From positions 310,001 through 374,000 of the forward strand of contig NIVC01000570.1 of NCBI GenBank assembly GCA_002269645.1: a DNA stretch of 64,000 nucleotides, read 5' to 3'. The translations under genes were made by a program, and so were the position numbers. Positions 1,681 through 27,844 of this stretch are shown one piece after another. The DNA is from Macrostomum lignano (lineage: Eukaryota). The notes below the pieces were generated by a model. It searched no databases. It saw only the letters and a list, made by a program, of their open reading frames with translations, and had not been told where the DNA came from. Numbering within the stretch: the first letter of the stretch is position 1; each line of letters begins with the position of its first letter.

Positions 1681-2886
1681 CTGAGGAAAGAATGGTTATG
1701 CCCCGCTTAGCCTACTCTCGGGTTTTGTTCAGTAGTGTGACTGGCCCTGGAAGCCCAGGTATTGTTAAATTATTCGCGTGCATTCAATCTATCAAATTAG
1801 ATAAATTCTCGTATTTCTTGCATCTCTCGCAACTGTCTGTCGTATATGTCGTGCTCCTTCCGTCTTTGTCAATTCGCTTAAACTCTAATTCAAAATATTC
1901 GGTGAGATCTGAAGATCACTCTTCTATAACTTGAAGAGCAGCCAGTCAACTTCTATAGGTGAAGTATTCATAAATTTTAGCAGCCAAGTTGGTGTCTTAG
2001 ACGTAATCCATTGTATTACTATATCCATAGTAATCATCGATTAAAAGTAATACTAATAGAGCCCTCGCCGTGACCTCTCGTTGGCTGAAATAGGCCGTTG
2101 ACATAATTAGATACAAGTTAAAATACAAGGAGTTGGAAATGATGGTCGCGAGAACACACTTTTAGCCTAATTTCAACACAAATAGGAATTGGAAATGATG
2201 GTCCCTAGGCTTGTTAAGAGACCAAAATTATTGGGCCGCACACAGAATTGAACCAGAGTACATGTATGAGTACTGTGGCGCGAGATTAAAACGTGTTGCT
2301 GTTGACTCCATTTTGCTCCCTCTGCAAAGAGGCGAACAAATCCAATTGTTCGCTAATTCAAATAGGTCTGATCGACACTGAAGTATTTTTGTGGTCCAAA
2401 TGGCCCAGAACTTGGATATTCCATGCAGTAAACTATTTGCCGAAGGAATCCATTCCAAATTACTCACTTAAACTTAGCAAACAGCTTGTTTTATTTAATA
2501 AAATGGATCAGTGCTCGGAGTGTGGAGTTCACTTTTTCTGCTGGAAAATTGGGCAGATCCGAATCGGATTTTAGCGACTTCGATGCACGATGCGGCATGA
2601 GAGCGACAAATCAATATCTGCAAGTAGCTCGTAAATGTATCTACCAGTATTCCACATGACCACTTGCAACTTTAAAAAAATTACAAAGCTCAAAAAACAC
2701 AAATATTGATATTATCGTTGCATTCGGTGCCTAATTAGATTATGCTTGTTGTTATATTGCATATTTAGTAAAATTAACTGATCAGTGAATAGGGGCTGTG
2801 AAGAGTCAGAGATCAAAGTCCGGTCAGCTGTGAGTTGTCTGGATCTTCCGATCGATAAAGCGACTTCGATGTGCGATGTGGCTCAT

Positions 2887-3069
2887 CTAACCATGAAAAT
2901 GAACGTGGAAGCCCTTCTTCCTCAGCTTCGGGAACTGCTCCTCTGACATCTTGGAATCGTCGGAGTCGGACGGATCCTCCTTCGACTCGCTTTCGGCCTT
3001 GGCCTCTGAGGGTTCGACAACGACCAGGGCTGCGAAAACCAGAAGTCCGAGAACCAGTTGCCACTTCAT
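2887..3069 (-). CDS. Secreted His-rich peptide precursor, copy 1 (C-terminus RKKGFHVHFHG)
   Basis: 60-aa ORF: hydrophobic signal MKWQLVLGLLVFAALVVV, acidic spacer, basic RKK site, terminal Gly; near-identical paralogs elsewhere in the window. Confidence 0.85.
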   Translation of the reverse strand: MKWQLVLGLLVFAALVVVEPSEAKAESESKEDPSDSDDSKMSEEQFPKLRKKGFHVHFHG

Positions 3070-4016
3070 GATTGCTTGAGTCGAGTCGATTCTTCGAGCT
3101 GTGTGTAGATTGAGTCGAGTCTGAGCTTGTTGCTCTGAGCAGTCGGCAGCTACGAATTTATACGCATCGGATCAGCACGTGTTTCCGGTCCGTTGAGAGG
3201 CGTTGTTTGAGTTGAAGACTTTCGCATGAGCAGAGACAGGCGTTGTTTCAAACGAATATCATGTAGCGTATATTTGCTTGCTGACACCCGAGCAATCAAA
3301 CGAGTACCGCTCTAGCTTTTTCTCAGTGCAAATTTATCTAACGCACGGCACTGCACTGCAGTCACTTGACTCAGTCGCATATTGAAGCCCAATGACGCTA
3401 TCTATCGACTGTGGAGAATAAATGCATGAAATCGAGATATCTACAGATTTTTTGGCTACTGTGTGTTGATTTCTGCAGTTTCTAATGGTAGTTCTGATTT
3501 GTCAGAGCACGCTCGTGTTCAGAATTTCTTTGATTTTATTCCTTATTCGGTCAAGTACGCGGATTTCAGTCGCCGATTTCGTGTGATTGAGCGATGCGGA
3601 GAAACCAGACGCATGTCCAGAAATGCATGGAAGCGTGCAATATGCCAGCTTATATTCTGACTTCGCCTTGTTCTGTCTACCGTTTTGCGGCAACTGCCGA
3701 CTTTCCGCGTTTCCTTTGACACTCGCTTTGAACGTGACTGGATATTTTTTAATCATTTCAACTCCACTAAGCTCTCATTACAGGATTATTTGAATGGGGT
3801 TTAACAGTAGAAAGACCATGGGGGTGTTTTTCAAAAACACACATTTTCCTTTGTCTGGATCTCCCAAAACTTTTCAAACAATTGCCATGAAAATCCAGAA
3901 CACGGGCTAAAATTTTCCGCTCTATGCGATGAAGCAACTTCGAGAATCACGAAAAATCGGCATCGTCTAGATATTCAACAAAAACCACCAACATTGAGAA
4001 ACATTTTCAACATTGA

Positions 4017-4288
<272 letters not shown>

Positions 4289-4290
<2 letters not shown>

Positions 4291-4568
4291 TTCGATCCGT
4301 TGGACATCACTGTACATCGCGTCATGTTCATTGACGATGTTCGACCATAGCTGTTCGATCCCAAGTCTGACGCCATGGTGAGTAAATTAGTACATATATA
4401 GATTGTTGATAATAAATTATACAAATTAATGTAAATTATCAATATTGTTGATACTGATGTACATGAATGTGTCTTGTTCATCAGGTTCCGCTCCTACGGT
4501 TGATCGCTGGGGACACCTTCAATGTCAACCAGAGGTATCAATCGATAGTGAGTCACCATCTGCGAGAC
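4289..4568 (+). pseudogene. Partial duplicate of the SF3 helicase gene (Walker B region, intron, start of exon 2)
   Basis: Near-identical to 9519-9790, including the GT-AG intron; carries an extra nonsense change (gag to tag). Confidence 0.85.
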
Positions 4569-4572
4569 TGAA

Positions 4573-5264
4573 AAACCAACTGACAGATGTATATTAATTA
4601 GTAAGCCGAGAAGGATCACAATGTTTTATATGTTGCTTCTGCCATTTTTAAATCGTTTGTACATATATATTATTTATTTATGCGATTATACTTTGCTCAT
4701 GGTTTGTACATATTAATGGATCCATAGTTGGTTGGCTGACTTTGTTTCAAAGCGGTCGATTCATTGTGTTGTTAAATAATCGTGTGTAAAGTGCATGCCG
4801 TTACCGTTCTGCATACGTTATAAAATTTGTTTGTATAAATATTTAAGTGGTTTATTGACCAAGATTCCGTTGCTGGTTGTTGACGCCAAAACTGTGTCCG
4901 AGTCATGCACATACAATTTCAGATGGGTCAAGATTTTAATCATGGCCGGTTGTTGTCAAACTTGTCCTCGTAGATGCCAAATGTGTGGATTATAATTGTC
5001 AATGTTGCTGTGCTAGTGACTGTAATAAAAACTGTTAACATTGTGTATGTATATATGTATGTATGTATGTATGCGTCTGTTTGTCAAAGCTGTGCTCAAT
5101 TGAGACAAATCTGTGTGCATGACTAATAACCGATATAACAGAAAAAATAAAAAAATCAAACCAGCATACGAACAATGGATAATAAATGTCAATAAGCTGA
5201 TTAAAATCTTCGTTTAATTATAATATAGTTTCAATAAACATATAGTTACAAAGGTGAGCAATTC
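4573..5264 (+). repeat. ~690-bp direct repeat, copy 1 (segment A)
   Basis: Runs aaaccaactgacagatgt...aaaggtgagcaattc; matches 12242-13755 once the solo LTR is removed. Confidence 0.9.

Positions 5265-6500: not shown

Positions 6501-6501
<1 letters not shown>

Positions 6502-6577
<76 letters not shown>
6502..6577. repeat. (CT)n microsatellite
   Basis: Direct reading; lies immediately upstream of the ORF1 start. Confidence 0.97.
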
Positions 6578-6602: not shown

Positions 6603-8573
6603 ATGCAACGGCAGCCTACTAACAACAGCGTTACCGGTTGTGGAGATGGTGCTACGCGAACTACACCGAATCGACGACAAAGGGGGGCTGTAGCCCAGCG
6701 GTAGCGCAGCTGCTCTGGTGTGCCAGCGACCCAGGCTCGATTCCAAGTGCAGTCACATTAATTTGGGGCTGAATTGGAATCTCGGCTTGGCTCTGCTCGT
6801 GCAATTAACGGCCTTGAGAGCCAACCCCCCAAGGCGCAGTGAAGTGTACATGCCTAACGATAAATAAAGTTAGGGCCGCTGTACATTACTGTGTGAGTGT
6901 GTGCCTGCGTACGTATCCGCGCGCTTGTATGCCTGCTCAGGGGAGTCGGCGGAATGGGCAGTAATGCCTCTCGCCGGTTGTGTGCCTATGTCGCTTAAAG
7001 TGCACACAACCCCCCCTGCCTCTAATAAAAAAAAAACACCGAATCGACTAGTCGCCATCGTAAACGACTTGTGGTCAAAAATATTGCCTGCCTCAGATAC
7101 ATCGGCCACCAGCATTGTACAACAAGATGCTGATATTGAATTGTGCAATATGGCTGCCGATTGTGATGTCGATGCCGATGCTGCCAATGCTGTTGCTGCT
7201 GATACTGCTGCTGATTCTCGCGTGTCGACGCCAGAATCTTACACGACCGCGCCGAACAGCCCAGGCAATAACGAAGCTATATTATCGGCTGTGAATAACG
7301 ACTGTGTTAACGCTGACGACGTCAATCAACGTCTCGTCTTGCTAAACCAGTCTCTGTCTGCTGCTGATGGTGATGGTTCTACTGTTGCTGGTGGTTCTAC
7401 TGCTGCTGCTGCTGCTGCTGAGGCTGAGGCTGCTGCTGAACCGTCGACTGTGCCAAAGTCGCACACTCCTACGCCAGATGTGTCCGCTCATACACCGGCT
7501 ATGTTGCGTGACAGCACTACTGACGAGGACGAACGTGCGACTGGGATTGTTGCCACATTTTCTCCAGCTGCAACATTCTAGACTGGCGACTTCATTGACG
7601 ACGAGTTTTGTCGAGCATCGACTCCAAAACAAGCGTCCGCCGCGGCGAAGGACTACATCAACGCGTCTATCTCGCCAGTCAACAGTCAGCTGTTATTCGA
7701 CGATGACGATGATGTCATGCGCGGTGTAGAATCGGCATCCAATAATGGCAGACTAGCAAACCGTGTCGTAAAAGGCAACGTCCACAGATAATGCTCTCCG
7801 ACTGCGAAATTGTATCAGATACATCTTCGTCACAGTTGTCGAGCGCAATTCCGTCTCCTTATCAACGACACACTGGACAGTCGCCAGACGATACGCGGCA
7901 GTCTGATGCGTCCAGTACAATAGGCGTGCCCAATCGGACGACCAAATCATCCGTCCGTGGACCGAGTCGGACGAGATTGCCTAGGAACAGTGACTCTGGC
8001 AGTTCTGTTAGCTCGCATACGATCGATCGTATCCGGGCACACGCATTGTCACGCCAGGCGTCTGTCTCGATTGCGGCGACAGCAGTGTCGAATGCGGCGA
8101 CAATGAAAGACAGGGCATTGGCGGCGATACGAGCGAGGTGTGAGGCGAGGGCAAAGTTTGTACAGTCGCCATCAACAACAGTTGCGGCGGCGGCGGCGGA
8201 GGCGGCGGTGAATGACTCATCGTCAATCAGTAGTCAATCGCTGACACAGTTGTCTGTCGATGACATCAGTTTGACTGATGCAGCCAATCTAGCCGCAAAC
8301 ACCGCCGCGTATGCCAATAGAAACGCGCGTCCGACTGTCCCACGGGATGTACAACCCGGATATGCACTAGCCTCCGGACCAATACGTTATCATCGAAATC
8401 GGGACGTCAAACCGCTTAACGCATTTTCAAGCGAAGACCGTTACGCACTCAGCTCAACGCGGATACACCACGTCGTGGAACTGTCCGGTGTGCTTGATGC
8501 TGACCAGCTTAAGCACACCGGCATTTATATGGCATTGCGCGTCACTGTAATGCGCTTGTTGTCGCCAATCTAA
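6603..8573 (+). pseudogene. ORF1 of the unclassified element: long Ala/Ser/Asp/Thr-rich low-complexity protein, disrupted
   Basis: ATG at 6603 (MQRQPTNNS...) joins in frame to TPNRLVAIVNDLWSK when the SINE and one TSD are excised. In-frame TAG at 7579-7581, frameshift near 7745, basic motif KPCRKRQRP, stop at 8573. Confidence 0.65.
6676..7035 (+). mobile_element. tRNA-derived SINE with 13-bp TSD
   Basis: A-box-like TAGCCCAGCGG, B-box-like GGCTCGATTCC, AATAAA/poly-A tail; TSD ACACCGAATCGAC at 6663-6675 and 7036-7048. Confidence 0.9.
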
Positions 8574-8590
8574 CCGGAAATTCGCCCAAC

Positions 8591-9954
8591 ATGCTGGATG
8601 ACGATGAACTTATCCATAAGACACTTAATCGTCACAGGCAATCTAAGCATGTGGTTGAAGACGATCTGGATTATAACTGGTGCGGAGTTACGTTGTACAT
8701 GCGAACACCACGCAGCATGTCTGGCTACCAGTTATATACCATCATTCACCAGATACTGTCTACAGACCCGAATATACGGTATATAGTAAGCGACACCAAT
8801 TGCCGAATCCTTATCGCCGGCGTCAGACAGGTCAAGAATGCGTTAGTCTCAGTTACAAGACACGATGGCTGCGCCATGCTACGTAATGTTAATATGTCCG
8901 ACTGTAGCATGCTCGTGTCAGCGTATCATTGGATTGAAAATCATAGCGAATTAGTAGTCACACCAGCGCCAGAGGACGATTTTCTGATGCGTCATGTGAC
9001 GTGCAAGCAAGAGCTAACTCGTCTCTTTCAACGCGTACAGAAGATTCGTCGATTCAATCTAGAGCGTCTCACTGGTTGCGCGTGCTGTGCTCATTTTATA
9101 AATCGGCATACCCGCGATCGTACCATCAATCACGTCTCTAGTGACAACAATTCTACAACTGGTGTTGACAATCAGTCCAATGAACGCGAGACTAGCGCTA
9201 ATTCGACTGATGCTGCTGCCGACGCCGCATCTGCCGCCGACAACGCTGCCGCCGACAACGCCGCCACTGACAACGCCGCCGCCGCCGCCGCCACTGCCGC
9301 CGCCTCAACCGACTCAGTACATGTCGACAGACCGCTGAATGAACGACGACGCGGATGTCCAACGATGCGAGCCGTGTGCGCAGCTCTTCGCCAACGTAAA
9401 GGTGTGGTGTAACTATGGGGGCCACCTGGTGTTGGCAAAACTCATAGCGTAGCTGCGCACTGCGGTGAGACTCGTGTTGTCAATATAGTCCCGTCACGAG
9501 CTACAGCCAACACGTTTCTATTCGATCCGTTGGACATCACTGTACATCGCGTCATGTTCATTGACGAAGTTCGACCAGAGCTGTTCGATCCCAAGTCTGA
9601 CGCCATGGTGAGTAAATTAGTACATATATAGATTGTTGATAATAAATTATACAAATTAATCTAAATTATCAATATTGTTGATATTGATGTACGTGAATGT
9701 GTCTTGTTCATCAGGTTCCGCTCCTACGGTTGATCAATGGGGACACCTTCAATGTCAACCAGAGGTATCAATCGATAGTGAGTCACCATTGGCGAGACAG
9801 ACTACTCCTCTTGGCTGGTCACGACTCTGTGAATGCGTACGACCCCGATGTACGGAGACGTCTTCGGCATGGTCACGTTTTGCAAGGTCGACTCGTCACG
9901 GTGCTGTGCGTTGGGCATCCGCTATATGGGACGTACGACTGTGACGGGATCTAA
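8591..9954 (+). pseudogene. Spliced SF3 helicase (T-antigen/E1/NS1/Rep-like), ~418 codons, one premature stop
   Basis: In frame after TAA 9410-9412: LWGPPGVGKT (Walker A), VMFIDEV (Walker B). A phase-0 intron 9608-9714 (gtgagt...ttcatcag) joins to VPLLRLINGDTFNVNQRYQ (B'-like), LLLLAGH (motif C position) and VRRRL (Arg finger). Confidence 0.75.
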
Positions 9955-10469
9955 CAGGTGATCCCATTCGCGATTGATTGTTTGCTCGATTGATTGATTG
10001 ACTAATTTCTTCTCGCGGCAGTATTAGCAGTAACAACAGCAGCAGCAGCAGCAGCATCTATAATAGCATTTGTAACAGCATCAGCAGCAGCAGCAGCATA
10101 TTAACAGATTATGCATTTTATAGATTAGATGTATTATTTCTCCAGTTAATTTTTAAACTATCCCATTCAATATAAGACTGAATATGAAATAGTGCAAAAA
10201 TGAGCTAGCAGCTATTTTTATCTCGATCAGTTCTTCTATTAATAGCTCCTTCCTTGTTCATCCTAGTTGTTGACAGAAATTATATTCTTTGTGAGAGTTT
10301 GTGTCATATGGTTTGGCACATAGACTATTTTGTTTGGGAATGAAATGTGTGAGAATTATACGCTCGTATATTGTCTATGGTAATCACTCGCCAGTCTATT
10401 CATCTGAATATCAATATCTCAATAGCTGAACATACGCTCGTAGTCTGCATACATGGATGTTAAGTATGA

Positions 10470-11045
10470 TTTGTGCACACGGGTGGTTGCATTGGCTATT
10501 ATGGTCGGTGCACACGGGTGAATATGGCTGTTTGCAGTGGCGAGCATGGTCGGTGCACACCGGTGGACATGGCTGGTTGCGGTGGCGAGTATGGTCGGTG
10601 CACACGGGTGAATATGGCTGATTGCAGCGGCGAGCATGGTCGGTGCACACCGGTGGACATGGCTGGTTGCGGTGGCGAGTATGGTCGGTGCACACGGGTG
10701 AATATGGCTGATTGCAGCGGCGAGCATGGTCGGTGCACACGGGTGAATATGGCTGATTGCAGCGGCGAGTATGGTCGGTGCACACGGGTGAATATGGCTG
10801 ATTGCAGCGGCGAGCATGTTCGGTGCACACCGGTGGACATGGCTGATTGCAGCGGCGAGCATGGTCGGTGCACACCGGTGGACATGGCTGTTTGCAGTGG
10901 CGAGTATAGTCTGTGCACACGGGTGGTTGCAGTGGCGAGTATGGTCGGTGCACACCGGTGAACATGGCTGTTTGCAGTGGCGTTTATGGTCGGTGCACGC
11001 GGGTGCACACGGTTGTTTACAGTGGCTAGTATGGTCGGTGCACAC
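10470..11045. repeat. 45-bp minisatellite, about 12 units
   Basis: Unit ggtgcacacgggtgaatatggctgattgcagcggcgagcatggtc; translates as 15-aa repeats on both strands. Confidence 0.92.
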
Positions 11046-11230
11046 GGGTTCCTTTCCTGGATTATGATAAACTGTGATTGATCTTGTTATAGAACTGGAA
11101 TATAGAGCGCCGTGTTGATTTATAATTGATTGATGCGCATTGGATTCATTCATTTTTTGATTGAAATAATTAAAATTGGCGCTTTCACATTTTTCTTCTT
11201 CATTCTATGTCCATTTCAAAATTGTCCATA

Positions 11231-12045
11231 GTGACTGGTGATGTGACCTTGTTGATTGGTGATGTGACCGTATGGGCTGGTGATGTGACCCGACTGGCTG
11301 GTGTTGTTACCATGTTGACTGGTGATGTGACCGTGTTGACTGGTGATGTGACCGTGTTGACTGGTGATGTGACCTTGTTGATTGGTGATGTGACCAGGTT
11401 GACTGGTGATGTGACCTTATGGGCTGGTGATGTGACCAGGTTGACTGGTGATGTGACCTTATGGGCTGGTGATGTGACCATGTGGACTGGTGATGTGACC
11501 ATGTTGGCTAGTGTTGTGACCTTATGGACTGGTGATGTGACCGTGTTGACTGGTGATGTGACCTTGTTGATTGGTGATGTGACCAGGTTGACTGGTGATG
11601 TGACCTTGTGGGCTGGTGATGTGACCAGATTGACTGGTGATGTGACCAGGTTGACTGGTGATGTGACCATGTTGGCTAGTGTTGTGACCTTATGGGCTGG
11701 TGATGTGACTATGTTGATTGGTGATGTGACCACGATGATTGGTGATGTGACAATGTTGACTGTTGATGTGACCATATGGACTGGTGATGTGGCCATGATG
11801 ACTGGTGATGTGACCATGCTGACTGGTGATGTGACCATGCTGACTGGTGATGTGACCATGCTGACTGGTGATGTGACCCTGTGGACTGGTGATGTGACCA
11901 TGCTGACTGGTGATGTGACCATGCTGACTGGTGATGTGACCCTGTGGACTGGTGATGTGACCATGATGACTGGTGATGTGACCATGGTGACTGGTGATGT
12001 GACCGTGTTTGACTGGTGATGTGACCTGGGTGACTGGTGATGTGA
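11231..12045. repeat. 21-bp minisatellite (gactggtgatgtgaccatgtt), copy 1
   Basis: 7-aa periodicity (TGDVTML on +, VTSPVNM on -). Confidence 0.95.
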
Positions 12046-12241
12046 CGATGTGAGATCGATGTGAGAATAGATACAATAGACAAGAGAAACCCAGACACTT
12101 GAGCGAGTGTAAATGAACGAACTACTGAGTGATATCCAAATTCACATTCAAATGAGGAACTTTATTAAAATTTCACCCTAATAATAAGTGCTGTGGCATG
12201 TCTTGGCAGAAGGCTGTTAAAATTGGAAAATTGCTTGAGAG

Positions 12242-13755
12242 AAACCAACTGACAGATGTATATTAATTAGTAAGCCGAGAAGGATCACAATGTTTTATAT
12301 GTTGCTTCTGCCATTTTTAAATCGTTTGTACATATATATTATTTATTTATGCGATTATACTTTGCTCATGGTTTTTACATATTAATGGATCCATAGTTGG
12401 TTGGCTGACTTTGTTTCAAAGCGGTCGATTCATAGTGTCACGTTATTGGCGTAGCGGCTAACTATGGCTATGACCCTTAAAAGGGCCGTTTTGACGAGAG
12501 TTGTAGTGAGTCGTAGTCTCAAAATAAGTTGAAGTCAACTCTTGTAAAGCGGATTTTGTAGCGGAGCACTTGGCGATAAAGGCAGGAACTGCCGTAGTTG
12601 TTTTTATTGGTAGTATCAATATTAGGCTTGGTTATTACTGTCAATACACAAACTATAGCTTTCTGGGCACTGGCGGCTGCAACAATGGTTTTTGAAGATA
12701 AATTGAATGTGAAGTCAAGTGGCAGACGAATGATGCAATGGCGACGTAACGTGATGAGCAATGGCAATGAGCACAGTGAAGGCAGTGAGACGCAGTAGGC
12801 AGGCAGATGAGCAGTGGCGAGGTTGGCGTCAGCCGTGGCGTGAGATAAGGAGGCTCGAGGCAGCCAGACAGAGAGAAGGAAAACAAGGCTAGACAAGGCT
12901 AGGCAAGCCAGACGGGACGGAGGACAAGCCTAAGGAGAGAGAACACCGAACACAAGTGAAGCCCCCAGCCCGCCAGGCGAAGGTTAATAAAGAGCGCAAA
13001 AGGGGGTAGCGTAAAACACGGAGAGTTTTCATTGGCTGGCGAGAGAACTTGAAATTATCGATCGTGCCAAAATTCACAGACGAGCGCAAGGCCTACCAAA
13101 TACACAGTGAAATAGCAGTTGATACAGATTATTTGCACGCTACTATAAGTAAACGTTAAAATAAACTATTGGAGAAATTAATATGAGAAATTGCAAGGGA
13201 AACTATAGTCCAACGGCCCTTTTGCTGGACCACTTAAACTAGCAACGTCACAATAGTGTTGTTAAATAATCGTGTGTAAAGTGCATGCCGTTACCGTTCT
13301 GCATACGTTATAAAATTTGTTTGTATAAATATTTAAGTGGTTTATTGACCAAGATTCCGTTGCTGGTTGTTGACGTAAAAACTGTGTCCGAGTCATGCAC
13401 AAACAATTTCAGATGGGTCAAGATTTTAATCATGGCCGGTTGTTGTCAAACTTGTCCTCGTAGATGCCAAATGTGTGTGATTATAATTGTCAATTTTGTT
13501 GTACTAGTGACTGTAATAAAAACTGCTAACATTGTGTATGTATATATGTATGTATGTATGTATGCGTCTGTTTGTCAAAGCTGTGTTCAATTGAGACAAA
13601 TCTGAGTACATGACTAAAAACCGATATAACAGAAAAAATAAAAAAATCAAACCAGCATACGAACAATGGATAATAACTGTCAATAAGCTGATTAAAATTT
13701 TCGTTTAATTATAATATAGTTTCAATAAACATATAGTTACAAAGGTGAGCAATTC
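12242..13755 (+). repeat. Segment A copy 2, interrupted by a solo LTR
   Basis: Colinear with 4573-5264 on both sides of the LTR. Confidence 0.9.
12436..13252. mobile_element. Solo LTR, 817 bp
   Basis: TGTCACG...AACGTCACA termini; 4-bp TSD ATAG at 12432-12435 and 13253-13256; the empty site is visible in segment A copy 1 (~4750). Confidence 0.85.

Positions 13756-14124: not shown

Positions 14125-14202
<78 letters not shown>
14125..14202. repeat. (GA)n microsatellite
   Basis: Direct reading; abuts the left Polinton TSD. Confidence 0.97.
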
Positions 14203-14205
<3 letters not shown>

Positions 14206-14211
14206 TGCATA

Positions 14212-15045
14212 AGTAGAAGGCATGAGGGGGCTTTTGGGACAAAATTTTTCACGTCTTCCATAATCCCATTAACTCCATCCATATTATCCCTGACAGAATC
14301 AGAAAAAAAGGGGGGTCGCACTCGCTCACAAAACGTCCTCCATAATCCCATTAAATCCATCCATATTATCCCTGACAGAATCAGAAAAAAGGGGGGGTCG
14401 CACTCGCTCACAAAACGTCCTCCATAATCCATTAAATCCATCCATATTATCCCCGACAGAATCAGTGCATAACAGGTGTCCTACTTGCTCCAAAAACTTC
14501 GAACATAATCCCATTAAATCCATCCATATTATCCCTGAATCAAAGCATAACAGGTGTCGCACTCGCTCACAAAACGTCATCTATAATCCTCCTAACCTAT
14601 CCTCCTTCCTCCACGACAGAATCAGAGCATAACAAGTGTCCTACATAATCCACCGACATCCACCCATAGCATATTCGAAACAATCAGAAAATAATCTGCA
14701 TTCTTCTCCCCACATTCAATCCGAAGCGGCGAAACCAGATCCTAAAGACTTTAAATACCCAAACCCAGGGTCCTTACCCTTTGAAAAAATCTAAATTCTC
14801 TCTAAAAATGCTTCCAGTTGTCTCTCCAGGTTCTTATTACAAAGCACACGAGCCTAATTACAAATCCAAGTACCGATGCAAACTTGAATGCAGCGAATAC
14901 ATGAGAAAATATTGGCCTGGCGTTGATATCAATGTCCCTAATATTAATCTAGCTCTCCAAAGACATTGGTTTCATAAGTATGGAGTAACCTATGTAAAAG
15001 ATTATGACAGCTACTATAACTTTGCAGAAATCATTAGGCAATTGT
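14212..15045 (+). repeat. Polinton left TIR (~830 bp, internal tandem subrepeats, includes a small ORF)
   Basis: Reverse complement of ~28411-29238; near-identical at the tip, diverging inward. Confidence 0.85.
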
Positions 15046-15047
15046 GA
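14781..15047 (+). CDS. Small unknown protein encoded in the left TIR
   Basis: MLPVVSPGSYYKAHEPNYKSKYRCKLEC...; homologous ORF in the right TIR. Confidence 0.45.
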   Translation: MKKSKFSLKMLPVVSPGSYYKAHEPNYKSKYRCKLECSEYMRKYWPGVDINVPNINLALQRHWFHKYGVTYVKDYDSYYNFAEIIRQL

Positions 15048-15051
15048 TTTC

Positions 15052-15927
15052 TTACATTCTCTCAATGATTAACGTCAATACAAACTCTTCACCGTTGAAA
15101 TCAACACCCATCCCATCTTCAGTCTCAAACTGTAGCACAATCTCGTGAATCTCCTTATTACTCAATACAACTCTTTTCACTGGATTTGGTTTCTCTACCA
15201 CCATCTGTCCTCCAGCAACAGAGTTGGAGATGTTGTACAAAATATTAGTTCGCTTTCCCTTAAATACCCAATCAAGACTGAGATTGCTTCTGATTAGAAT
15301 ATTCAAACCCTTTACAATGTCTGCAATATTGGGTGCTAAGAACAAACCGCTTACACTTTCCCGGACCATTCTAACAGTCCCCGATGCTTGAGTGGCGGTC
15401 CGCACCGCGGATTCTGCCTTATAAACTTTCTTCTCGAATCCCAGTTCCCTATACCAAGTGTCATCTTTAAACTCAACCTCCGCATCTTTGTGAACTTGCA
15501 TGACCACTCTCATTACAGTGAGATCATAGGTTAGTTTGACAGGGAACAGTTTCTTCTCTGGCTTACTCGCATCAGGTGTCTCAAAATGGCCTCTCTTAGT
15601 AAAGAAATTTTCTAGAAAGTTATTATAGGTATCCACACTTTGCGTGCTCACATGGAATACCACAGGGTCTGCTGCTGCACCTTTCCATTTGTAATAAAAC
15701 TTATTATTTGCTGCCATCACATTGGGAACGTTTGACCAACCAGTGAAGTCGTTAAGATAGAGATGGTAATTAGCACCTGGATCCAGGCGAATCGCCTGCT
15801 TTAATTTTTCAACAAACATCCCGTTTAAGTCATTAATTCGCCCGGTTATTGTAATAGGAATGCTCTCCTTAGAGTGTGAAACAATGTTGTTTAGTCTTTC
15901 GGCTATAGCTTCCATTTTTTGTCCCAA
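15052..15927 (-). CDS. Minor capsid (penton, single jelly-roll) protein
   Basis: 291 aa adjacent to MCP; C-terminal NILIRSNL...NILY...EKPNP...IHEIVLQFETEDGMGVDFNGEEFVLTL pattern typical of Polinton mCP. Confidence 0.75.
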   Translation of the reverse strand: MGQKMEAIAERLNNIVSHSKESIPITITGRINDLNGMFVEKLKQAIRLDPGANYHLYLNDFTGWSNVPNVMAANNKFYYKWKGAAADPVVFHVSTQSVDTYNNFLENFFTKRGHFETPDASKPEKKLFPVKLTYDLTVMRVVMQVHKDAEVEFKDDTWYRELGFEKKVYKAESAVRTATQASGTVRMVRESVSGLFLAPNIADIVKGLNILIRSNLSLDWVFKGKRTNILYNISNSVAGGQMVVEKPNPVKRVVLSNKEIHEIVLQFETEDGMGVDFNGEEFVLTLIIERM

Positions 15928-15936
15928 AAAAAATAT

Positions 15937-17223
15937 TTAAACTTTACTGGATGAATTGTTGATCATGTTAAGCTTCACCTTCCTCTCAAATGCATAGATA
16001 ATGTACAGGTCCACGGGTGTTGCGGTAGTCCTTTCAATGTTAGTCACGATATTCACAGGGCTGTTATCAGTAGGCATTTGTCTGGCAGACACATCAGCGC
16101 CAAACATCGGATATAGAGTTCCATATTGAAGAGCAGTGATAGCAATTCCATTGTTCTCTTTCACAGCCAAGTCGACCAACTCGCTGTAAAATTTGCTAAT
16201 CTTGTTCTGACTGAAATCTCCATTTTGTGGCAGTGCAGGGTAAAGATTATCACTGATTTCATGCTGAATGGACCGCACGTCTCCATGCATGTAGCGTATG
16301 ATGCTATTTGGGTTTCTCATATTAATAATGATATACCTTGGATTGCTGCATGATCCCTCTTTAATGCAGATGTTTGTTCTAGTTTCGTTTCGCTCATCTC
16401 GACACATGTAGGCTGTGTATGCAACATCAATGTCCTTCTCTATTGCCTTAAGATAATCCGCTTTTAGTGCAGTCTTTGGCTCAATGACTTCCAAATACAG
16501 CTCGATTCCGGTTAGCTTCACCTCCATCCTTGTGTGGTCCGCCCCAGTCCACAACACTCTACTGCGATCATCTCTAGTCAGTCTAAATGTGTAGCTAAAG
16601 TTACTAGTCAGTCGATTAAATGTATTACAGAATCCACTCATGAATCTCAATGGTACAAATACATCAACAGACCGATACTGCGGGTTCTTAGCAGCATCAT
16701 CTGCACCTTGCAATGCATAGTTGTATCTCTTCTTCCTATTTTTATAACCACTATCATTGATATCTCCTTCTTTTTGGTCTGCAATAAAACCCGCGCCACT
16801 TCCCAATTGAATAAAATCAGGATTCTCGATCAAACAATGAGCGTCATAGACAATTCCAAAGTTGGCGATTCGCTCCAACTCAGTGCTCCCATTCGATACA
16901 CTAAACTCCTTGAACATGTACGCCCAAAAGTTACTGATCAGAGCCACATCCGCATCATGCTTGTCAACGTTAGCACGAGCCGCATCCGCACCACCCTTTG
17001 TCTTGAATTGAAATGTCATATGGAAGCCGCTCTTAAGACTGTGCGCACTAACAAAGGACGAACATCCATTGTATGTAAATGTCAGTGTTTGGCCAGGACC
17101 AAGATTTGTTTCATTCTGATTTTCCTGACTGGGAACTCTTACCTGAGTCGCTTTGATTGTGCTATCATCACTCAAAATAGGCTTGTTAATTTTGTAGAAA
17201 ACTGGTGTCAGTGGGTCGTTCAT
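15937..17223 (-). CDS. Major capsid protein (double jelly-roll)
   Basis: 428 aa, beta-rich; motifs AYMFKEFSV..GSTELE, VFVPLRFMSGF, LTGIELYL, PRYIII, YPMFGADVS; intact ORF. Confidence 0.8.
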   Translation of the reverse strand: MNDPLTPVFYKINKPILSDDSTIKATQVRVPSQENQNETNLGPGQTLTFTYNGCSSFVSAHSLKSGFHMTFQFKTKGGADAARANVDKHDADVALISNFWAYMFKEFSVSNGSTELERIANFGIVYDAHCLIENPDFIQLGSGAGFIADQKEGDINDSGYKNRKKRYNYALQGADDAAKNPQYRSVDVFVPLRFMSGFCNTFNRLTSNFSYTFRLTRDDRSRVLWTGADHTRMEVKLTGIELYLEVIEPKTALKADYLKAIEKDIDVAYTAYMCRDERNETRTNICIKEGSCSNPRYIIINMRNPNSIIRYMHGDVRSIQHEISDNLYPALPQNGDFSQNKISKFYSELVDLAVKENNGIAITALQYGTLYPMFGADVSARQMPTDNSPVNIVTNIERTTATPVDLYIIYAFERKVKLNMINNSSSKV

Positions 17224-17253
17224 TTTTTAACTAAAAATAAAATAAAATAAGAA

Positions 17254-18468
17254 ATGAAGCGAAAAAGTACACAGCAGATATCTGAACTAGAAAAGCTGGC
17301 GCAGGCAGAAAAGAGAGTTACCGGGCTAATCAATAAGGAGCAACAATCCTACAATGAGTTTGTCCAAGCAGCCACAGAGTTTCATAAGCCCGGGTATGGA
17401 GAAGCTAAGAAAAATATTGATCAGGTCAAAGAAACTATCGACGACATACAGGAAACCCAAGTGCAAAAGGTTTTGGGCAAAATTCCAGAAGCACCACAGA
17501 TACAGCCGCAACCACAACAACCACAACCACAACAACAGCAACTAAAAGTGACAGATAACATTTTTGGACCAGTAGAGCGTGTCGAACATGATGGGAAATA
17601 TGTATTTGGAATAAGTATGTGGAGAAAAAACATTTATAATGAACCAGTGGAATATTATATCGACATAAATAAGGAAAATATTTCTGTTGTCAAATGCTCA
17701 GAAGCTATGAAAATTCCTTTCACAGACGCCTTACTGACTTTTATGACCAAGAACCAAGAGAGAATCTCGGACAAGCAGCTAAAGAACTACAGAGATCTAG
17801 TGACTTTTTCTCTTGCTAGAGATATAGAAATACTAAAGGTCCCAGAAGTTCTGAAACACATGTACAATGGCAGTGTCAACCTGACTAAATTTAAAAAGTA
17901 CAAGCACTTTAAACAATGGTTTGGTTTGCCAGATCAGGGGGAAGTCATTGATCAGATGAAATATCTAGAACAACAACCACAACCACAACAACAACAACGA
18001 CCGCCACAACAGCAGCAACATTTCACAGAAGAACAAGTACTCAGGCAACTGGAAAATGCAGATCCGACTCAAGTAGCTAAATATAAAAATGATCACCCAA
18101 ATGCCTGGCAACAACTAGAAAATATCTCCCCAGATCGAATGAATAGAATCAATCAAAGAGTTTTCACACCTCAACAAAGACAGGCACCACATGACAGTTC
18201 CATCTCTGAAAGCGAGCAGTCTTTTGCATCACCTCCCCAGCAGCTACAAGCCCAACCAACTCCACAACCCCAAGACCAACCACCCAAATCTGGAAAAGGA
18301 ATAGCTGAAATCTACAAGCGAGTAGCGGTTCTTCTAGGAGCGGCAAAGACCGGAATGAAAGACGAGAATAGAAAAGAATTTGTCAACATCCTGGACAAAA
18401 TGCTTGAGAGAAAATACATCGATAAGAGGGCGAAAGAGCTTCTGCTTTCGCGGTTCAACAAAAAATAA
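17254..18468 (+). CDS. Polinton Gln/Pro-rich protein with C-terminal KSGKG-I...RVAVLLGAAKTG...EFVNILDKM motif
   Basis: 404-aa ORF with A-rich ATG context; the C-terminal motif resembles one recurrent in Maverick ORFs (from memory). Confidence 0.6.
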   Translation: MKRKSTQQISELEKLAQAEKRVTGLINKEQQSYNEFVQAATEFHKPGYGEAKKNIDQVKETIDDIQETQVQKVLGKIPEAPQIQPQPQQPQPQQQQLKVTDNIFGPVERVEHDGKYVFGISMWRKNIYNEPVEYYIDINKENISVVKCSEAMKIPFTDALLTFMTKNQERISDKQLKNYRDLVTFSLARDIEILKVPEVLKHMYNGSVNLTKFKKYKHFKQWFGLPDQGEVIDQMKYLEQQPQPQQQQRPPQQQQHFTEEQVLRQLENADPTQVAKYKNDHPNAWQQLENISPDRMNRINQRVFTPQQRQAPHDSSISESEQSFASPPQQLQAQPTPQPQDQPPKSGKGIAEIYKRVAVLLGAAKTGMKDENRKEFVNILDKMLERKYIDKRAKELLLSRFNKK

Positions 18469-18487
18469 TTTATTTCTATTTAAAAAG

Positions 18488-18868
18488 ATGCCAATTATTT
18501 TCGAAAAAGACATTGACAAATACTATGATAAAGAGGAACTCAATCTCATTAAACGCGGATCTGGACTTTTCCCTGCAGGCCACTATCCAAGAAAAGAACG
18601 CTCAGGGAACGGTCTTGCCGATTTGATCGCTCAGGGGGCCAAGATTTTTAAGGTCATTGGAGAGAACAAAGAGAACATCAAGAACGTTGCCGAAGCGGCT
18701 GGCAGTGTAGCCACAGCAGCCAAAAAGATTAAAGATACGGTTAATGAAACCCGGAAATCAGTACCAGATATTCAACCCCTTGCACCGAGTGCAGATAGTG
18801 TCGATCCAGCCATCTACGCAAAGATGAGAGCTGAATATAAGAAAGGAGGCGGTTTTAAATTTGACTAA
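18488..18868 (+). CDS. Small putative virion core protein with GxG motifs and an amphipathic helix
   Basis: ATG at 18488 (MPIIFEK...); RGSGL, SGNGLADLIAQGAKIFKVIG, KGGGF. Confidence 0.55.
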   Translation: MPIIFEKDIDKYYDKEELNLIKRGSGLFPAGHYPRKERSGNGLADLIAQGAKIFKVIGENKENIKNVAEAAGSVATAAKKIKDTVNETRKSVPDIQPLAPSADSVDPAIYAKMRAEYKKGGGFKFD

Positions 18869-19072
18869 TTTGGTGCACCCTGACGGTAAAAGAGGTGTGA
18901 GGGTGTAGGACTGGTCGGATGTAGGACTAGTAGAAAAAAAGACACACAAGTACACAACCCGAAAAAAAGACACACACATCCCGTAAAGAGACACACACAT
19001 ACACATCCCGCAAAGAGACACACGCGTCTTAAATACACAAGTTTAAAAAGAAAAAGTTTTTTACATAAAAAA

Positions 19073-19881
19073 ATGGACTTCACAAACGAATTTTGGTGAA
19101 ATGCAATCACTGGACACGCAATCAGATAAATTTTGCTCACAACGAGATAATTCCAGGGCACTTCCGATGCATTGTTGTTGGCTCATCTGGGTCAGGGAAA
19201 ACCTTCAGAGTTTTTAACATGCTCCTCAGACCTGGATTCCTCGATTATGACACACTACATATCTATTCACCCACTCTGTATCAAGATGAGTATAAAATGC
19301 TAGTAGCGGGCCTACAGAACAAACTCAACAAGGAAGATATTATTCAATGTTTTAGACATCAAAAAGACCTCAACAGCAACCCGGAAGTTGTAGCCACTGA
19401 ATACGCAAAGCACATCCCAGACAATGAAAAATGGCAAAATATTAAAGTTTTCACTTATGGAGATCCACAGATAGATCCTAAAACTAAACTCTTACCTCAA
19501 CCTGATGAGCTAGAAAAGGGGAGAAAGCACCTGATTGTCTTTGATGACTGCATGACCGGTCCCCAGAAACAGATAGAAAATTATTTCACCCGGGGTAGAC
19601 ACAATAACTGCAATGTTATTTACATTGCCCAAAACTGGTTTGAACTGCCAAATAAAACAATTAGAGGTAACTGTAATTTGATTCTCCTTTTCCCAACCAT
19701 ACCACAGGATCGACTGAAACGATTTTATAATGAGGTCATTGCCCCAGCTCACATTACATATCCAGCTAAGAACTCTAACAGAACAATATCACAGGAGGAA
19801 TTTGTTAACATATGCTATGAAAAGTGGAACCAACCCTATCAGTTTGTCATGATTAATAAGGAGAAAAGAATTTTAATTTAA
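19073..19881 (+). pseudogene. A32/FtsK-like DNA packaging ATPase with a 1-bp frameshift near the start
   Basis: GSSGSGKT (Walker A), LIVFDD (Walker B), RGRHNN, YIAQNWFELP. ATG at 19073 (MDFTNEF) is out of frame by one T in a T-run. Confidence 0.88.
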
Positions 19882-19897
19882 TTTTTTATTTAAAAAA

Positions 19898-20551
19898 ATG
19901 TCAGTAAATTTTGCAGGTGAGTCAACTACAGGCAACAGCACTCTCACAACTTCCTTCCTTGACAAGCGCTACATTAACACTGATGAAGAGATCCCAGAGA
20001 TTAAACTGAATAAAAACAGACTGAAACAATTAGAGCGCTCCATGCACCAGCTACAACAGATAAACATAGAAGATCTCCGCATAAAAGTAGCCAGGCAGAA
20101 GTTTGAAAGTGATAAGCTTTATGTACAGGTTGTACACGCAACTAATGAACTTAGGTCATAGATAACTTCGGCGGTCTCGCAAATCAACGGCTTGAGATCG
20201 ACAGTTAATCTTCTGGGAAATTCCACTGATAGACGGATGCGTATTCTTGAAGGAGGAGTTTTCACAAACACAGCTAAAGTGAATAATTTAGAAGAGTTCA
20301 TGAACCAGTCAACAGCATTGCATGATAGAATTAAAGAAAGACTTGATGCATTAGAGAGAAACGATGTATCACACAGTAGCTATCTAAACGGAATGTATAG
20401 CTCTTGGGGTAAAATAATAAGGAGGCTTAATCGTCTGGAGAGAACACTCAATCTTCGCGATATTGCTATTGATGAAGCAGAATCTGCTGCTCGTCCGGTC
20501 ATTACTGCAGATGAAATTATCAAAAAGAAAACAGATCTTCAAACCGGATAG
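19898..20551 (+). pseudogene. Coiled-coil protein split by an in-frame TAG
   Basis: ORFs 19898..20161 and 20192..20551 share a frame and are separated only by TAG 20159-20161. Confidence 0.6.
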
Positions 20552-20587
20552 TTTTATAATTTTTTTTATTTTTTCTAGAGAAAAAAA

Positions 20588-21310
20588 ATGGCCCAACAAA
20601 ATTCTCTATACGATCAGTCTCAATACGCTGAACCTAAAATACCGACAGCACCAAACTCAATGGCACCGAATTCGAACACACAAAGCATGAATGCACCGAA
20701 TCTGAATGCACCTCAATATGAGCAACAAAAACTCTACCCCGTCATTTCTTGTAATTCTCAGCAGTTTCGATTGGTGGAGATTCAAAAAATGCGCGATGAT
20801 CTTGAAAAAAATATTTTCCACAACACAAAGAAAATTAAACGCTATGACAGCCACTGTAAATTTTTCGACTACAGCAATATGATTCTAGGATCTGTGTCTG
20901 TTCTATCTGGATCTGCTGCAGCTGTCTCAGTGTTGCCAGCCATCACAGTCCCAATCGCAATTCCACTTGGTTCAGTAGGTGCTGCATGTGGACTTATTTC
21001 AGCAATAACTGGAGCATTAGCGCGAAACAGGCGAAAAAAACTAAAGCAGCTACAGGAGAAGCAAGTAAAAGAGAAAGGGGTGCACACTTCAATCATAGGG
21101 TACATTTCAAGGGCAATCGAGGATAAGTTCATTTCAGAGGATGAGTTCAAAACCATTCAGGATCTTTATGAACAATCAATTCGAATGAACTTGAACATGG
21201 TCGGTACTGATGACATGAGCTCGAGAAAGTTTTTTAACATTATGCGGAAAGAAAGTCGGCAAGAAAGTCGGCAAGAAGGACGACGAGAAATGCACAATGA
21301 ACCCCTATGA
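20588..21310 (+). CDS. Polinton coiled-coil protein with two hydrophobic (TM-like) segments
   Basis: FRLVEIQKMRDDLEK, hydrophobic ILGSVSVLSGSAAAV...LGSVGAACGLISAITGAL, then ISRAIEDKFISEDEF. Confidence 0.6.
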   Translation: MAQQNSLYDQSQYAEPKIPTAPNSMAPNSNTQSMNAPNLNAPQYEQQKLYPVISCNSQQFRLVEIQKMRDDLEKNIFHNTKKIKRYDSHCKFFDYSNMILGSVSVLSGSAAAVSVLPAITVPIAIPLGSVGAACGLISAITGALARNRRKKLKQLQEKQVKEKGVHTSIIGYISRAIEDKFISEDEFKTIQDLYEQSIRMNLNMVGTDDMSSRKFFNIMRKESRQESRQEGRREMHNEPL

Positions 21311-21713
21311 AACACAGGTACGAATAATTTCCTTGTAGGTCTTTCGTGTTTTGGTCATTGCATAGCTCGTACAAAACAGTCATGCACAGCTCACCGCAAA
21401 TATCACTGCTAAGACCTTGGAGAATAAAGTCTGAGCGATAAATTTTTTTATTATTTTTTCCCTTCATATAATTTCTTAGCTCTTCTGGTACTGCCGTCCC
21501 ATAGCTATCGAAGTAATAACACTTGTGCTTGCGATCGGGATCAATCACCCAGCAAACCCAATGAGATCCTGGCTTATCGGTGGTGTCAAAGTTCATGATG
21601 CCGCATTCCTTTCTTAGAGGAAAATCAGGCAGAGTGTCCCTCATAAATATTCCTCTAAAGTTTGGGATTTCCAGTTCGTTAGCCAAATCTTCAAGAAAGT
21701 TATTTGTCGTCAT
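21306..21713 (-). CDS. Adenain-like cysteine protease
   Basis: GSHW (His), YFDSYG (Asp), Q...SDICG (Gln/Cys). The likely true end KTYKEIIRTCVS* at 21306 needs a 1-bp correction in an A-run. Confidence 0.9.
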
Positions 21714-21777
21714 TTTTATGTCATTTTTTATGAGGTTTATTAAACTTTCTCTTAAACCTAAACCTAATCTCCACCTC

Positions 21778-24700
21778 CTAAACCCAACCTCCTAAGCCTA
21801 ATCTCCAGTGCCCGAACGGTAGACTGTTAATATTGTCATCAAAAATGAATCTCTTGTTATCTGCACCTGACAGTCCAATCTTCTTTTGCTGAATTGTGTG
21901 AATAATATGGTTTTTAGATTGTAGCTTTGAGAACTCATGTGATGTCTTTTTGTTGCAATTCAAGGCGTCTCTGTATTCAGCTTCATTAATTTCCTTCCTA
22001 ACCACACGTTTCGGAATTCCCTTTGATTTTTTAATTGGGTCTGACGACTCACATTTTACAAAATAGGACTTTGCTCTCAACCCAATGAATTCAGTGATTA
22101 TGTCACCAGCAATCTCGTCTTCATTTTCCCAATCACTTTCTTGTTAGTGGCGTCAAACACTTGATCGCCATTCTGTGTCCTGCAAGATTCATCATACTCA
22201 GACAAGTCAAACAAATCTTTTTGCTGCAGCATGTCCTGATAAATGTCTTCTGTTTGAATGTCCATAATAAAACTGTCTGTGTCAGTGTACAAGAGTTTCA
22301 TTTTATCCTTGTACTGCTGCTTCATGCCATAGAAGAACTGGTACATCAGACGTTTTGATTCGTCGAGACAGTGACACCTGTATAGATCGGCTTGCGCAGC
22401 GTCACCTTGGTTTTGTAAAATATGATCACACCTAAGTAGCTATTAAAGATATGGAGTTCTTTGAATGTTGGCTTTGACATATTTGCCTGAATAACAGCAG
22501 GCTCTGATGAGGTAACAAGTTTCAGGTTTGTTCTTTTCCGCTCATTCTCAAGAGTCTTGCCATAGACAGAGTTGTTGGCCAACTTAAAGAGGTTCTTGTC
22601 AAAGTCGTTGGTTGCTTTGGTCCTAAACTGGGTGTTCTTATCAATGTAGGGTTTCATCCACGCTTCCTCTGTAAATGTAAGAGCCCGTGAACTTTGGTGA
22701 CCCTGCAACCAAGTGAGATAAAATATGAAGCAGTTTGTAATGGATTTTGTAACGTGTCTTGTTGTTTAGATTCTGTGTTAGTTTCTCTGTATGTTCTTTT
22801 TCTGTTCCTGACAGGTGCCAAGTTCCATTGGGAGTTTCGATTATTTTCGGGCACTTGATGTTCTCTGGGAAGGGTGGAAAGTCAGAGAAATAGTCGTGAA
22901 GCTCTGGTGGAATGTAAACATCAACCTCATAAATGGCAGCCAATGAAAAGTCCCACTTTAGTTCTGATGAGGTAGCCATCGAAAATCTCTAACTGGAAGA
23001 TCTTGACTCATCGCCCACCGTAGAGATTATTAGCGTCCAAGTAAGTAATGTAGTTTGAGGGCTGCTCCTTATTGTAAGATCAATGTAGGGATTGTTTGCT
23101 TTTGCATACCTGTTAACGCAAATTGAGATCCCCCTCGCTTTGACGATTCGACAAAATTGTACATGTCAATGTCTGTAAGAAGTTCAATGTACCAATCTGG
23201 ATCTTGATCCCATTTCATTTTAAGCAAAGATTCCCAGCTAGTGGCAGGCAGAGACACATAATGTGCTGGATCGAGGCCATATGCTGTGTACCAGGTATAT
23301 CTGAAGGTTTCAAACACATCGGCCAGCAGAAACACATCTGTGTAGAGGTAAAGCAGGTGATACTGGAAGAAGTTTTGACAATTAAAGTAATTATAGACAT
23401 GCTTCGCGTGCTCATAGTCTTTGTCAGAGATTCCAGAGTCTGTTAGCTTTGAAAAGAACTTTCTTGTGGTGGTAAACTTCTTCAAATACGTGATACCCAG
23501 TAATATTTTCATAGGGGTAGAAGCCTTTCTTTCTTAAAAGTTTAAATGATTCATCAGTGTTGTTAATTTTACTTGCAAACATCTTTGTATATGTACATTG
23601 TTCATCTTTTAGATTCTTGCTTAGTTCGTCTAGACTGGCAGCTAGAAATTGATATGAATCCTTCAGTCTTATTTTACCTTCACTCGAACCTTCACCTTTA
23701 CCTGAGTTATCCTGTTTAATATCAACACACTTAAACTTCTCCTTGTTCTCTGCGATGCAATCAAGGTGTATGTCTGGAATCATGCCGATTTTTTCAACTA
23801 TTAAATGCATGTCATAGTTCTTTGCGTTGTGACAAAATATCGTTAGATCATGAATGTTCGATTTTAGCTTTAGATTACAGGTGTTATGCGCTGCACCTCT
23901 AAATTTCCCAGTAAAGTGGCAGTGGTCCCTAACGGTGGGGTTTTTAAAATCAGTGCAAGTTAACTGTTTCCTGCAGATGTAGCAATGAGTTGCTGATAGG
24001 AAATTGCTTTCATCCTCCTCAGTCATCATTATTGGAACAGGTTGAAGGGTGCTAATCACTCTTTGCAACTCTAACATTCTGGCAATAAACTGCTCCACAC
24101 ACTGCTCTCCAAAGAAATAATTATACTCAACAAGTCCTTTTGTATTAATAAAGGCATATGCTACTGAATTGGGGACATGTTTTTGAGTTTGGGTTTGTTT
24201 TTGAGTTTGAGTTTGTTTTTGAGTTTGAGTTTGTTTTTTAGTTTGTTTTTGTGTTTCCGGCACGATTGAGCATTCGAAATCAGCATATACAACAAATAGA
24301 AGCTTCTCCATCTTGTGATAGTTCTTAAACCGGAGATACTTCTCTTCAGCTGAAGGAAGAGAGCAGTTTGTTGGGTGATCCTCGCATGATAATTCATGCT
24401 CTGTTCGTTTTTCAAAGCGTTCAGGTCCACTGTAATGCTTAAGGCACAAGCGGCAGATGGCAACAGCCTCGTGATGATTATTCAACTGCTTGTGAATGAG
24501 TCTTGAAAGATCTTTAATCCAAACATAGTGAGCCTCCTCTAGTAAATTACCAATCACTAGAAGATCCACTTCAGTCCGCCTTTTCCCTTCACGATCTAAA
24601 ACGTCTTTGCTACATCTGACCGGTTGAACTTTCTCAGTTTTTTCACTCCACTCAAAGACTGTGATTCTAATTTTGTTATTAAACACTTCTTCTAGCTTAG

Positions 24701-25661: not shown

Positions 25662-25783
25662 TTTTTTCTATAAAATAAAAAAATTTTGAGGGTGAGCACC
25701 CTGATAGAAAAGTTGAACTGTTTCTACATCCTATAAGTAGTGTTAGGTTTATGAAGCTGGATAAAGTGGGGTTTTAAACCTCA

Positions 25784-26239: not shown

Positions 26240-26255
26240 TATTTATTTTAATATT

Positions 26256-27251: not shown

Positions 27252-27281
27252 TTTTTTAAAAAGAAAATTTAAAATAAAATA

Positions 27282-27782: not shown

Positions 27783-27844
27783 AGTTAGGCGAGGAATCCT
27801 TTGAGCTTGTTAAGGAATCCTTGAGCTGGGCAAGCTTTTTTTCT

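Follow-up and report, generated by a model that had tools for sequence, protein, structure and literature searches.

The protein described here can be compared with the replication proteins of small DNA viruses. Parvovirus NS1 carries an N-terminal domain and an SF3-type ATPase in one protein. Polyomavirus large T and papillomavirus E1 are laid out as a disordered regulatory N-terminus, a non-catalytic domain, a Cys-rich module in the case of T antigen, and an SF3-type ATPase, and among the CRESS-DNA viruses spliced Rep genes are known in several groups. The window analyzed here, 64,000 nucleotides of Macrostomum lignano contig NIVC01000570.1 (positions 310,001 to 374,000), contains a broken gene that a preliminary description had assigned to an SF3 helicase resembling T antigen, E1 and NS1, with an endogenous small DNA virus or a new transposon class as its proposed source. 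On balance, we favor the view that an initiator-like, lineage-restricted gene, probably derived from a virus or mobile element, survives here as a decayed copy. The window copy itself does not function as a protein and is dead.

HMMER, run over the full set of 1.84 billion representative proteins, recovered four true relatives (P0001-P0004) and one spurious match. Two are from Macrostomum lignano: P0001 (252 aa, E 1e-22) and P0002 (594 aa, E 5e-15), the latter a chimera whose gene model includes a receptor tail, the source of its present label. P0003 and P0004 lie on short JGI and ENA metagenome contigs, and a fifth relative found in a later search, P0006, comes from the same JGI sample as P0003; P0001 and P0003 are named 'hypothetical protein'. 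A word-index protein search with the window translation, with X placed at the stop, gave no match, and the same kind of search with the family alignment returned P0004 alone. When IMG/VR was scanned with a motif pattern as well as with the protein and the family alignment, only unrelated P-loop proteins and no true relative were recovered. A literature search found no description of the family, which is undescribed, has no Pfam family and is known so far only from Macrostomum lignano and four short metagenome contigs. Among the loci compared at the DNA level, L001 encodes P0004 and L002 is M. lignano contig NIVC01001938.1. Two further candidates were rejected as relatives, L006 being a high-GC phage gene of the AAA_24 type and L009 a sequence that fits the pattern by chance, in a frame that is closed; L004, L005, L007 and L008 are weak Walker A matches from the IMG/VR and metagenome scans.

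The features of the window gene are collected in Table 1. The plus-strand ORF that opens at 8591 is closed by an in-frame stop, and LWGPPGVGKT follows directly in the same frame. In P0001, P0002 and P0006 the stop aligns with the Tyr of GVVY(L/I)YGPSGVGKT, which bears out both the premature stop first described and its placement at the position of a usual aromatic residue. The Walker B sequence VMFIDE is found 40 residues beyond the Walker A Lys, and the frame that resumes after a 107-nt interruption ends at the stop codon at 9952-9954. The open reading of the gene falls into three pieces, which match the relatives independently and in order, the two ATPase pieces with E values of 9e-18 and 2e-31. 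Because the pieces are colinear with the relatives, because a Tyr stands where the window has its stop and because the join across the 107-nt stretch is exact, the motifs are not chance occurrences.

The gene also extends further upstream than first described. Upstream of the ATG at 8591 the frame stays open, and the adjoining tract can be read in a different frame as far back as 7746. Upstream ORFs in L010 and L002 align with this tract, and L010 reads through the region as a single frame. Compared directly with the upstream ORF of L002, the window tract has no significant BLASTP similarity, and the relationship shows only via the L010 intermediate and the multiple alignment. Since the frame is open and the ORFs of relatives align upstream, the ancestral gene did not begin at the ATG at 8591 and the earlier figure of ~418 aa is an underestimate. 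A further tract 5' of position 7746 has short matches to the upstream ORF of L002 that are mostly colinear and each insignificant alone; it matches no Pfam family and may belong to the gene. In the clearly homologous part the window copy has one stop and one frame change, so that the stop noted earlier is confirmed and is joined by a frame change that had been missed; with the far upstream tract included, there are two of each.

Table 1. Positions of the gene, its second copy and the coding regions of the neighboring element, numbered from the first nucleotide of the window.
Feature	Position	Strand	Remarks
Patchwork second copy of 9518-13755	4288..5264	+	
Possible further 5' extension of the gene	6874..7745	+	Low-complexity open tract rich in Ala/Ser/Thr/Asp
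Broken gene, one part	7746..9954	+	From open tract aligned with upstream ORFs to stop codon; one in-frame stop, one frame change, 107-nt GT..AG sequence
Family-specific N-terminal domain, ~110-130 aa	8684..9022	+	tblastn matches in L001, L002 and L010 (E 3e-13 to 7e-10)
First Cys pair and His-rich cluster (GCACCAHFINRH)	9074..9109	+	CxxC kept in P0001, P0004 and P0006
Ala/Asp/Asn-rich low-complexity linker	9137..9325	+	Also in P0002; short in P0001 and P0006
SF3-like P-loop ATPase domain, one span	9344..9873	+	
Second Cys pair (C-x6-C), just 5' of the P-loop	9353..9379	+	
Walker A	9419-9442	+	
Walker B	9551-9568	+	
B'-like segment, LLRLINGDTFNVNQRYQS	9721-9774	+	
Sensor-1 position, LLLLAGHD	9802-9825	+	
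Candidate Arg finger, RRRLRHG	9853-9873	+	
C-terminal tail, short and rich in Cys/His, with the stop codon	9913..9954	+	An AAA+ lid domain would not fit
Polinton: double jelly-roll capsid domain	15937-17223	-	ORF match
Polinton: Pox_A32 packaging ATPase	19093-19881	+	ORF match
Polinton: adenovirus-type protease	21240-21713	-	Sub-threshold match
Polinton: 696-aa ORF	23424-25514	-	Weak Endonuclease_7 match
Polinton: Adeno_PX	25784-26239	-	ORF match
Polinton: rve integrase	26256-27287	-	ORF match
Polinton: parvovirus-type phospholipase A2-like domain	27282-27782	+	ORF match

Several lines of evidence suggest what kind of ATPase the gene encoded. Walker A (GPPGVGKT) and Walker B (VMFIDE) are present where they had been reported, are separated by a short spacing and are both kept in P0001, P0002 and P0006. 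A conserved block, LLRLxNGxxFxxNxKxQ, between Walker B and motif C is a candidate B' motif, and the model of P0006 (pLDDT 50.7) predicts strands there. RR(L), a candidate Arg finger, is invariant in P0001, P0002 and P0006 and is found in the window and in a shifted frame of L001. Both blocks had been pointed out earlier, and their presence and conservation hold up, although their roles remain those of candidates assigned from sequence. Motif C is atypical, as had been observed: the Asn of SF3 proteins is absent, its place being taken by AGH in the window, P0001, P0002 and P0006 and by SSV in P0004. Beyond the sensor-1 position the protein has only ~43 residues, too few to accommodate an AAA+ lid.

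Profile comparisons point in the same direction. P0001 matches PF00910 (RNA_helicase) over positions 1-88 of 105 (E 0.006, 17.5 bits against a cut-off of 21.5) and P0006 matches PF19263 (DUF5906) over positions 1-106 of 114 (E 0.002, 19.2 bits against a cut-off of 27.6). These two families belong to SF3, and each match spans the entire domain yet scores below threshold; over the ATPase domain the cut-off is not attained for any Pfam family. With the window pieces and the relatives, other Pfam, PHROGs and NCBIfam families gave matches at the level of the P-loop only, those to PF00004 being confined to 16-31 residues there, and sequence and profile searches of the PDB likewise found the P-loop only. 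AlphaFold (AF2) models were built from very shallow alignments; the P0004 model (seven-row alignment, pLDDT 46.7) was set aside together with its fold search because of its low pLDDT. A Foldseek search with a predicted model had been suggested at the outset, and with the P0006 model (pLDDT 50.7, pTM 0.48) it returned from the PDB generic ASCE/AAA+ or secretion ATPases at TM ~0.3, none at E<=1e-3, and from BFVD 12 matches at E<=1e-3, the top 50 being nearly all CRESS-DNA virus Rep proteins, a dominance that may partly reflect a library rich in CRESS Reps. Given the weak model and the make-up of the library, we treat the BFVD result as supportive, not decisive. The ATPase is likely of SF3 type and nearest to the CRESS Rep helicases, short of formal membership. 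What stands of the original assignment is thus a small, lid-less ATPase of likely SF3 type; a specific likeness to T antigen, E1 or NS1 is not seen by sequence or fold.

PF00910 is also the 2C family, and one Picornavirales polyprotein is found among the BFVD matches (rank 43), as might be expected if the locus were an endogenised piece of the 2C helicase of a picorna-like RNA virus. Against this, the protein in the window, P0001 and P0006 stops on its own ~45-70 residues past the ATPase core and has an N-terminal domain of its own, and no protease or polymerase lies downstream; we regard a 2C origin as highly improbable.

N-terminal to the ATPase, the family alignment shows a helix-rich segment that runs into a conserved CxxC, which in the window comes with extra His residues; the Cys/His cluster reported there is present. 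The two Cys pairs may together form a zinc module. We found no conserved His pair (HUH/HUQ) and no YxxK in the N-terminal domain alignment, in agreement with the initial reading of the window: an isolated LHLQ occurs in P0003 only, and the single conserved Tyr (SYP) lacks a following Lys. The domain matches no Pfam family, Rep families included, gives no fold or motif match and has no detectable relative outside the family. The likeness of this domain and the putative zinc module to an origin-binding domain followed by a zinc module is one of layout only.

The 107-nt stretch that interrupts the ATPase begins with GTGAGT, ends with a pyrimidine run and CAG, and has a G+C content of 23% as compared to 51-54% in its flanks. 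The two ATPase pieces abut exactly across it in P0001, with no residue missing or extra. The P0001, P0004 and P0006 genes are uninterrupted in their DNA at this site, so the stretch is extra sequence in the lineage of the window. The simplest explanation, and the one first offered, is that it is a spliceosomal intron, here particular to this lineage of copies. The upstream part of L002 has a 78-nt GT..AG intervening sequence of its own at a different place, and this one is not in L010.

To what extent the family has been maintained can be judged from its other copies. L002 has one frame change, within the N-terminal domain. L001 has one near the C-terminus, beyond which the conserved RR and the DHxIxDCxGxC tail go on in another frame, and L010 has one frame change before the gene is cut short, with a Tc1/mariner-like ORF next to it. 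L003 covers no more than 919 nt, in which the ATPase part is open. Thus each of the four sufficiently covered genomic copies, those in the window, L001, L002 and L010, carries one to a few breaks. A comparison of the copies shows differences at 0.54-0.71 of sites for codon position 3, which is near saturation, and at 0.24-0.50 for position 2; of 104 identical residues in total, 70 are encoded by different codons. This codon-position pattern and the synonymous codon differences indicate that the family diverged as working genes and that the copies decayed later. The preliminary description had asked for a homologous copy retaining both the intron and an open frame; the relatives read at the DNA level lack this intron and no sufficiently covered copy is fully open, yet constraint at the protein level is seen in the family.

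Transposase-like sequences were observed beside two copies. Just downstream of the gene in L002 is a 722-bp element (11201-11922) that has perfect terminal inverted repeats of 48 nt and contains a helix-turn-helix ORF of Tc1/mariner-like type, and the ORF that follows the cut-short gene in L010 (1263-1958) is similar.

The window holds a second, patchwork copy of part of the same region. Positions 4288-4571 correspond to 9518-9801 (284 bp, 96.5% identical, intervening sequence included), 4570-4769 to 12239-12438, and 4763-5264 to 13253-13755. The differences within the duplicate are evenly spread and fall mostly on codon positions 1 and 2, indicating no constraint since the duplication. These data bear on whether the window copy might be intact, expressed and spliced in the animal, its breaks reflecting assembly or sequencing error or strain polymorphism. 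Frame changes are common errors in long-read assemblies, and the splice-like ends here are canonical. The stop, however, is a base substitution with no indel, the 284-bp duplicate carries its own stop along with its mostly position-1 and position-2 changes, and the Illumina-type metagenome contigs of the relatives are broken as well, so that an intact window copy seems improbable.

Long microsatellites, (CTA)88 at 4027-4290, (CT)38 at 6501-6577 and (AG)39 at 14125-14203, edge the duplicated segments and adjoin the left end of a Polinton. Their location at duplication edges and at the Polinton end suggests that rearrangement breakpoints may fall at simple repeats.

That Polinton/Maverick-like (adintovirus-like) element of ~15 kb occupies positions 14204-29244 and has terminal inverted repeats of 842 bp that are 91.7% identical (14204-15044 and 28409-29244) and contain 82-bp tandem repeats. 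Its recognizable coding regions are listed in Table 1; none of its ORFs that were tested matched a protein-primed polymerase. As only ~4.2 kb separates the helicase-like gene from the left terminal repeat, we considered whether the gene might be cargo or an accessory gene of this element. The 842-bp repeats bound the element at 14204 and 29244 and the gene, which ends at 9954, lies outside them, and the L002 copy has no Polinton neighbor; a cargo gene is the least probable of the explanations considered.

The surroundings are otherwise rich in repeats. Just downstream of the gene are a 45-bp tandem array of ~12 units (10473-11049) and a 21-bp array of 39 units (11232-12051). The 21-bp array has an inverted counterpart ~24 kb away (35896-36547), and so the Polinton and its surroundings sit between two inverted satellite blocks. 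An unclassified dispersed repeat of ~0.7-1.1 kb is present in at least eight copies, in both orientations and at 74-83% identity, the first at 2574-3681 and further ones at 38853-39936, 41029-41714, 43223-43950, 45808-46565, 48170-48718, 49901-50196 and 50781-51690. Positions 33446-35554 (57% GC), with ORF matches to endonuclease-reverse-transcriptase, zf-RVT and RNase H, are a fragment of a LINE-type retrotransposon. The regions 54784-56115 and 58836-61439 contain one ORF with a retroviral-type aspartyl protease on the plus strand and an 867-aa ORF on the minus strand that matches no Pfam family.

The main alternative to a viral or mobile origin is that the family is an ordinary, fast-evolving flatworm host family of orphan P-loop NTPases, which have a disordered N-terminus but lack such ancestry, and that the window holds one of its pseudogenes. 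The L002 copy is flanked by the host genes COG7 and EME1-MUS81, and its gene model stems from a transcript-based annotation that leaves out annotated repeats (PMC5730564). Being transcript-based and outside annotated repeats, the L002 copy is transcribed and low-copy. Intervening sequences of spliceosomal type stand at different places in two copies, and introns, transcription and low copy number fit a host family just as well. M. lignano is moreover a recent polyploid with much duplicated sequence (PMC5730564). Neither in the window nor in L002 did we find the gene accompanied by a capsid gene or any other viral gene, by terminal repeats, or by a target-site or flanking duplication, and the IMG/VR scans recovered no exogenous relative. 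On the other side, each of the four sufficiently covered copies is broken despite divergence under selection, no other organism among the 1.84 billion representatives has the family, and the only whole-domain matches, like the only fold matches at E<=1e-3, are to viral-type SF3 helicases. In our judgment a host family is the less likely of the two readings.

We infer a viral or mobile origin because of this restricted distribution, because selection was followed by decay and because the ATPase is of a viral type. Of the endogenous virus or new transposon class first proposed, decayed, host-flanked copies that diverged under selection are what can be observed, whereas an exogenous relative, a capsid and terminal repeats are not found.

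If an initiator-like gene of viral or mobile origin is the correct reading, the intact protein would consist, in order, of a long disordered N-terminal region, a family domain of ~120 aa that is not a nuclease, two Cys pairs, an SF3-type ATPase and a Cys/His tail. By analogy with known initiators, it might assemble into a ring and spend ATP on moving along DNA or opening it, and the N-terminal domain might provide DNA recognition in place of the nicking chemistry of HUH initiators. The family diverged under selection at the protein level and single genomic copies decayed afterwards, a sequence of events that is to be expected if the copies descend from a virus or mobile element that encoded an initiator-like protein, or from one endogenised long ago. 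A more specific and rather doubtful proposal is that the locus is a remnant of an unrecorded lineage of flatworm nuclear DNA viruses or episome-like elements, in which a non-nuclease N-terminal domain and zinc module like those of T antigen and E1 were combined with a CRESS-Rep-type SF3 helicase, an architecture that would be intermediate between the Reps of ssDNA viruses and the initiators of small dsDNA viruses.

Should the SF3 assignment be confirmed and a viral or mobile source be found, this would be an initiator-type protein in which a new N-terminal domain replaces the HUH nuclease; it would bear on the kinship among the initiators of small DNA viruses and extend the host range of such elements to flatworms. 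If it instead proves to be a host orphan family, it would be an unannotated family, lacking a Pfam entry, with a recognizable ATPase, and of local interest only.

The family can be compared with known systems as follows. Classical AAA+ proteins (FtsH, Cdc48, RFC, Vps4) share the P-loop and the general ASCE core, but the matches span only ~20-35 residues around Walker A or have a TM of ~0.3, and the family lacks their C-terminal helical lid. Parvovirus NS1 similarly combines an N-terminal domain with an SF3-type ATPase, yet the family has no PF01057 match and no HUH motifs, and NS1 was not matched in the sequence or fold searches. With the D5/P4-type primase-helicases (PF19263) there is a match of P0006 over 106 of 114 profile positions at E 0.002; unlike them, however, the family has no primase domain, and the match is sub-threshold in P0006 and absent in P0001 and P0004. 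The likeness to large T and E1 is one of layout only, as there is no sequence or fold match, the ATPase of the family is much smaller and the family has no J domain. The Reps of CRESS-DNA viruses (Cressdnaviricota) differ in that the family described here has no HUH/YxxK endonuclease domain, carries AGH and not Asn at sensor-1, adds two Cys pairs and a Cys/His tail, and has a long disordered N-terminus that makes the protein 2-3x the size of a typical Rep. Their SF3 domain is nonetheless the likely closest counterpart of the family ATPase: both are small, lid-less P-loop ATPases with a short spacing between Walker A and Walker B, a conserved, candidate hairpin-like segment with a basic residue lies between Walker B and sensor-1, and it is the CRESS Reps that give the best match in the BFVD fold library, alongside the whole-domain, sub-threshold match to PF00910.
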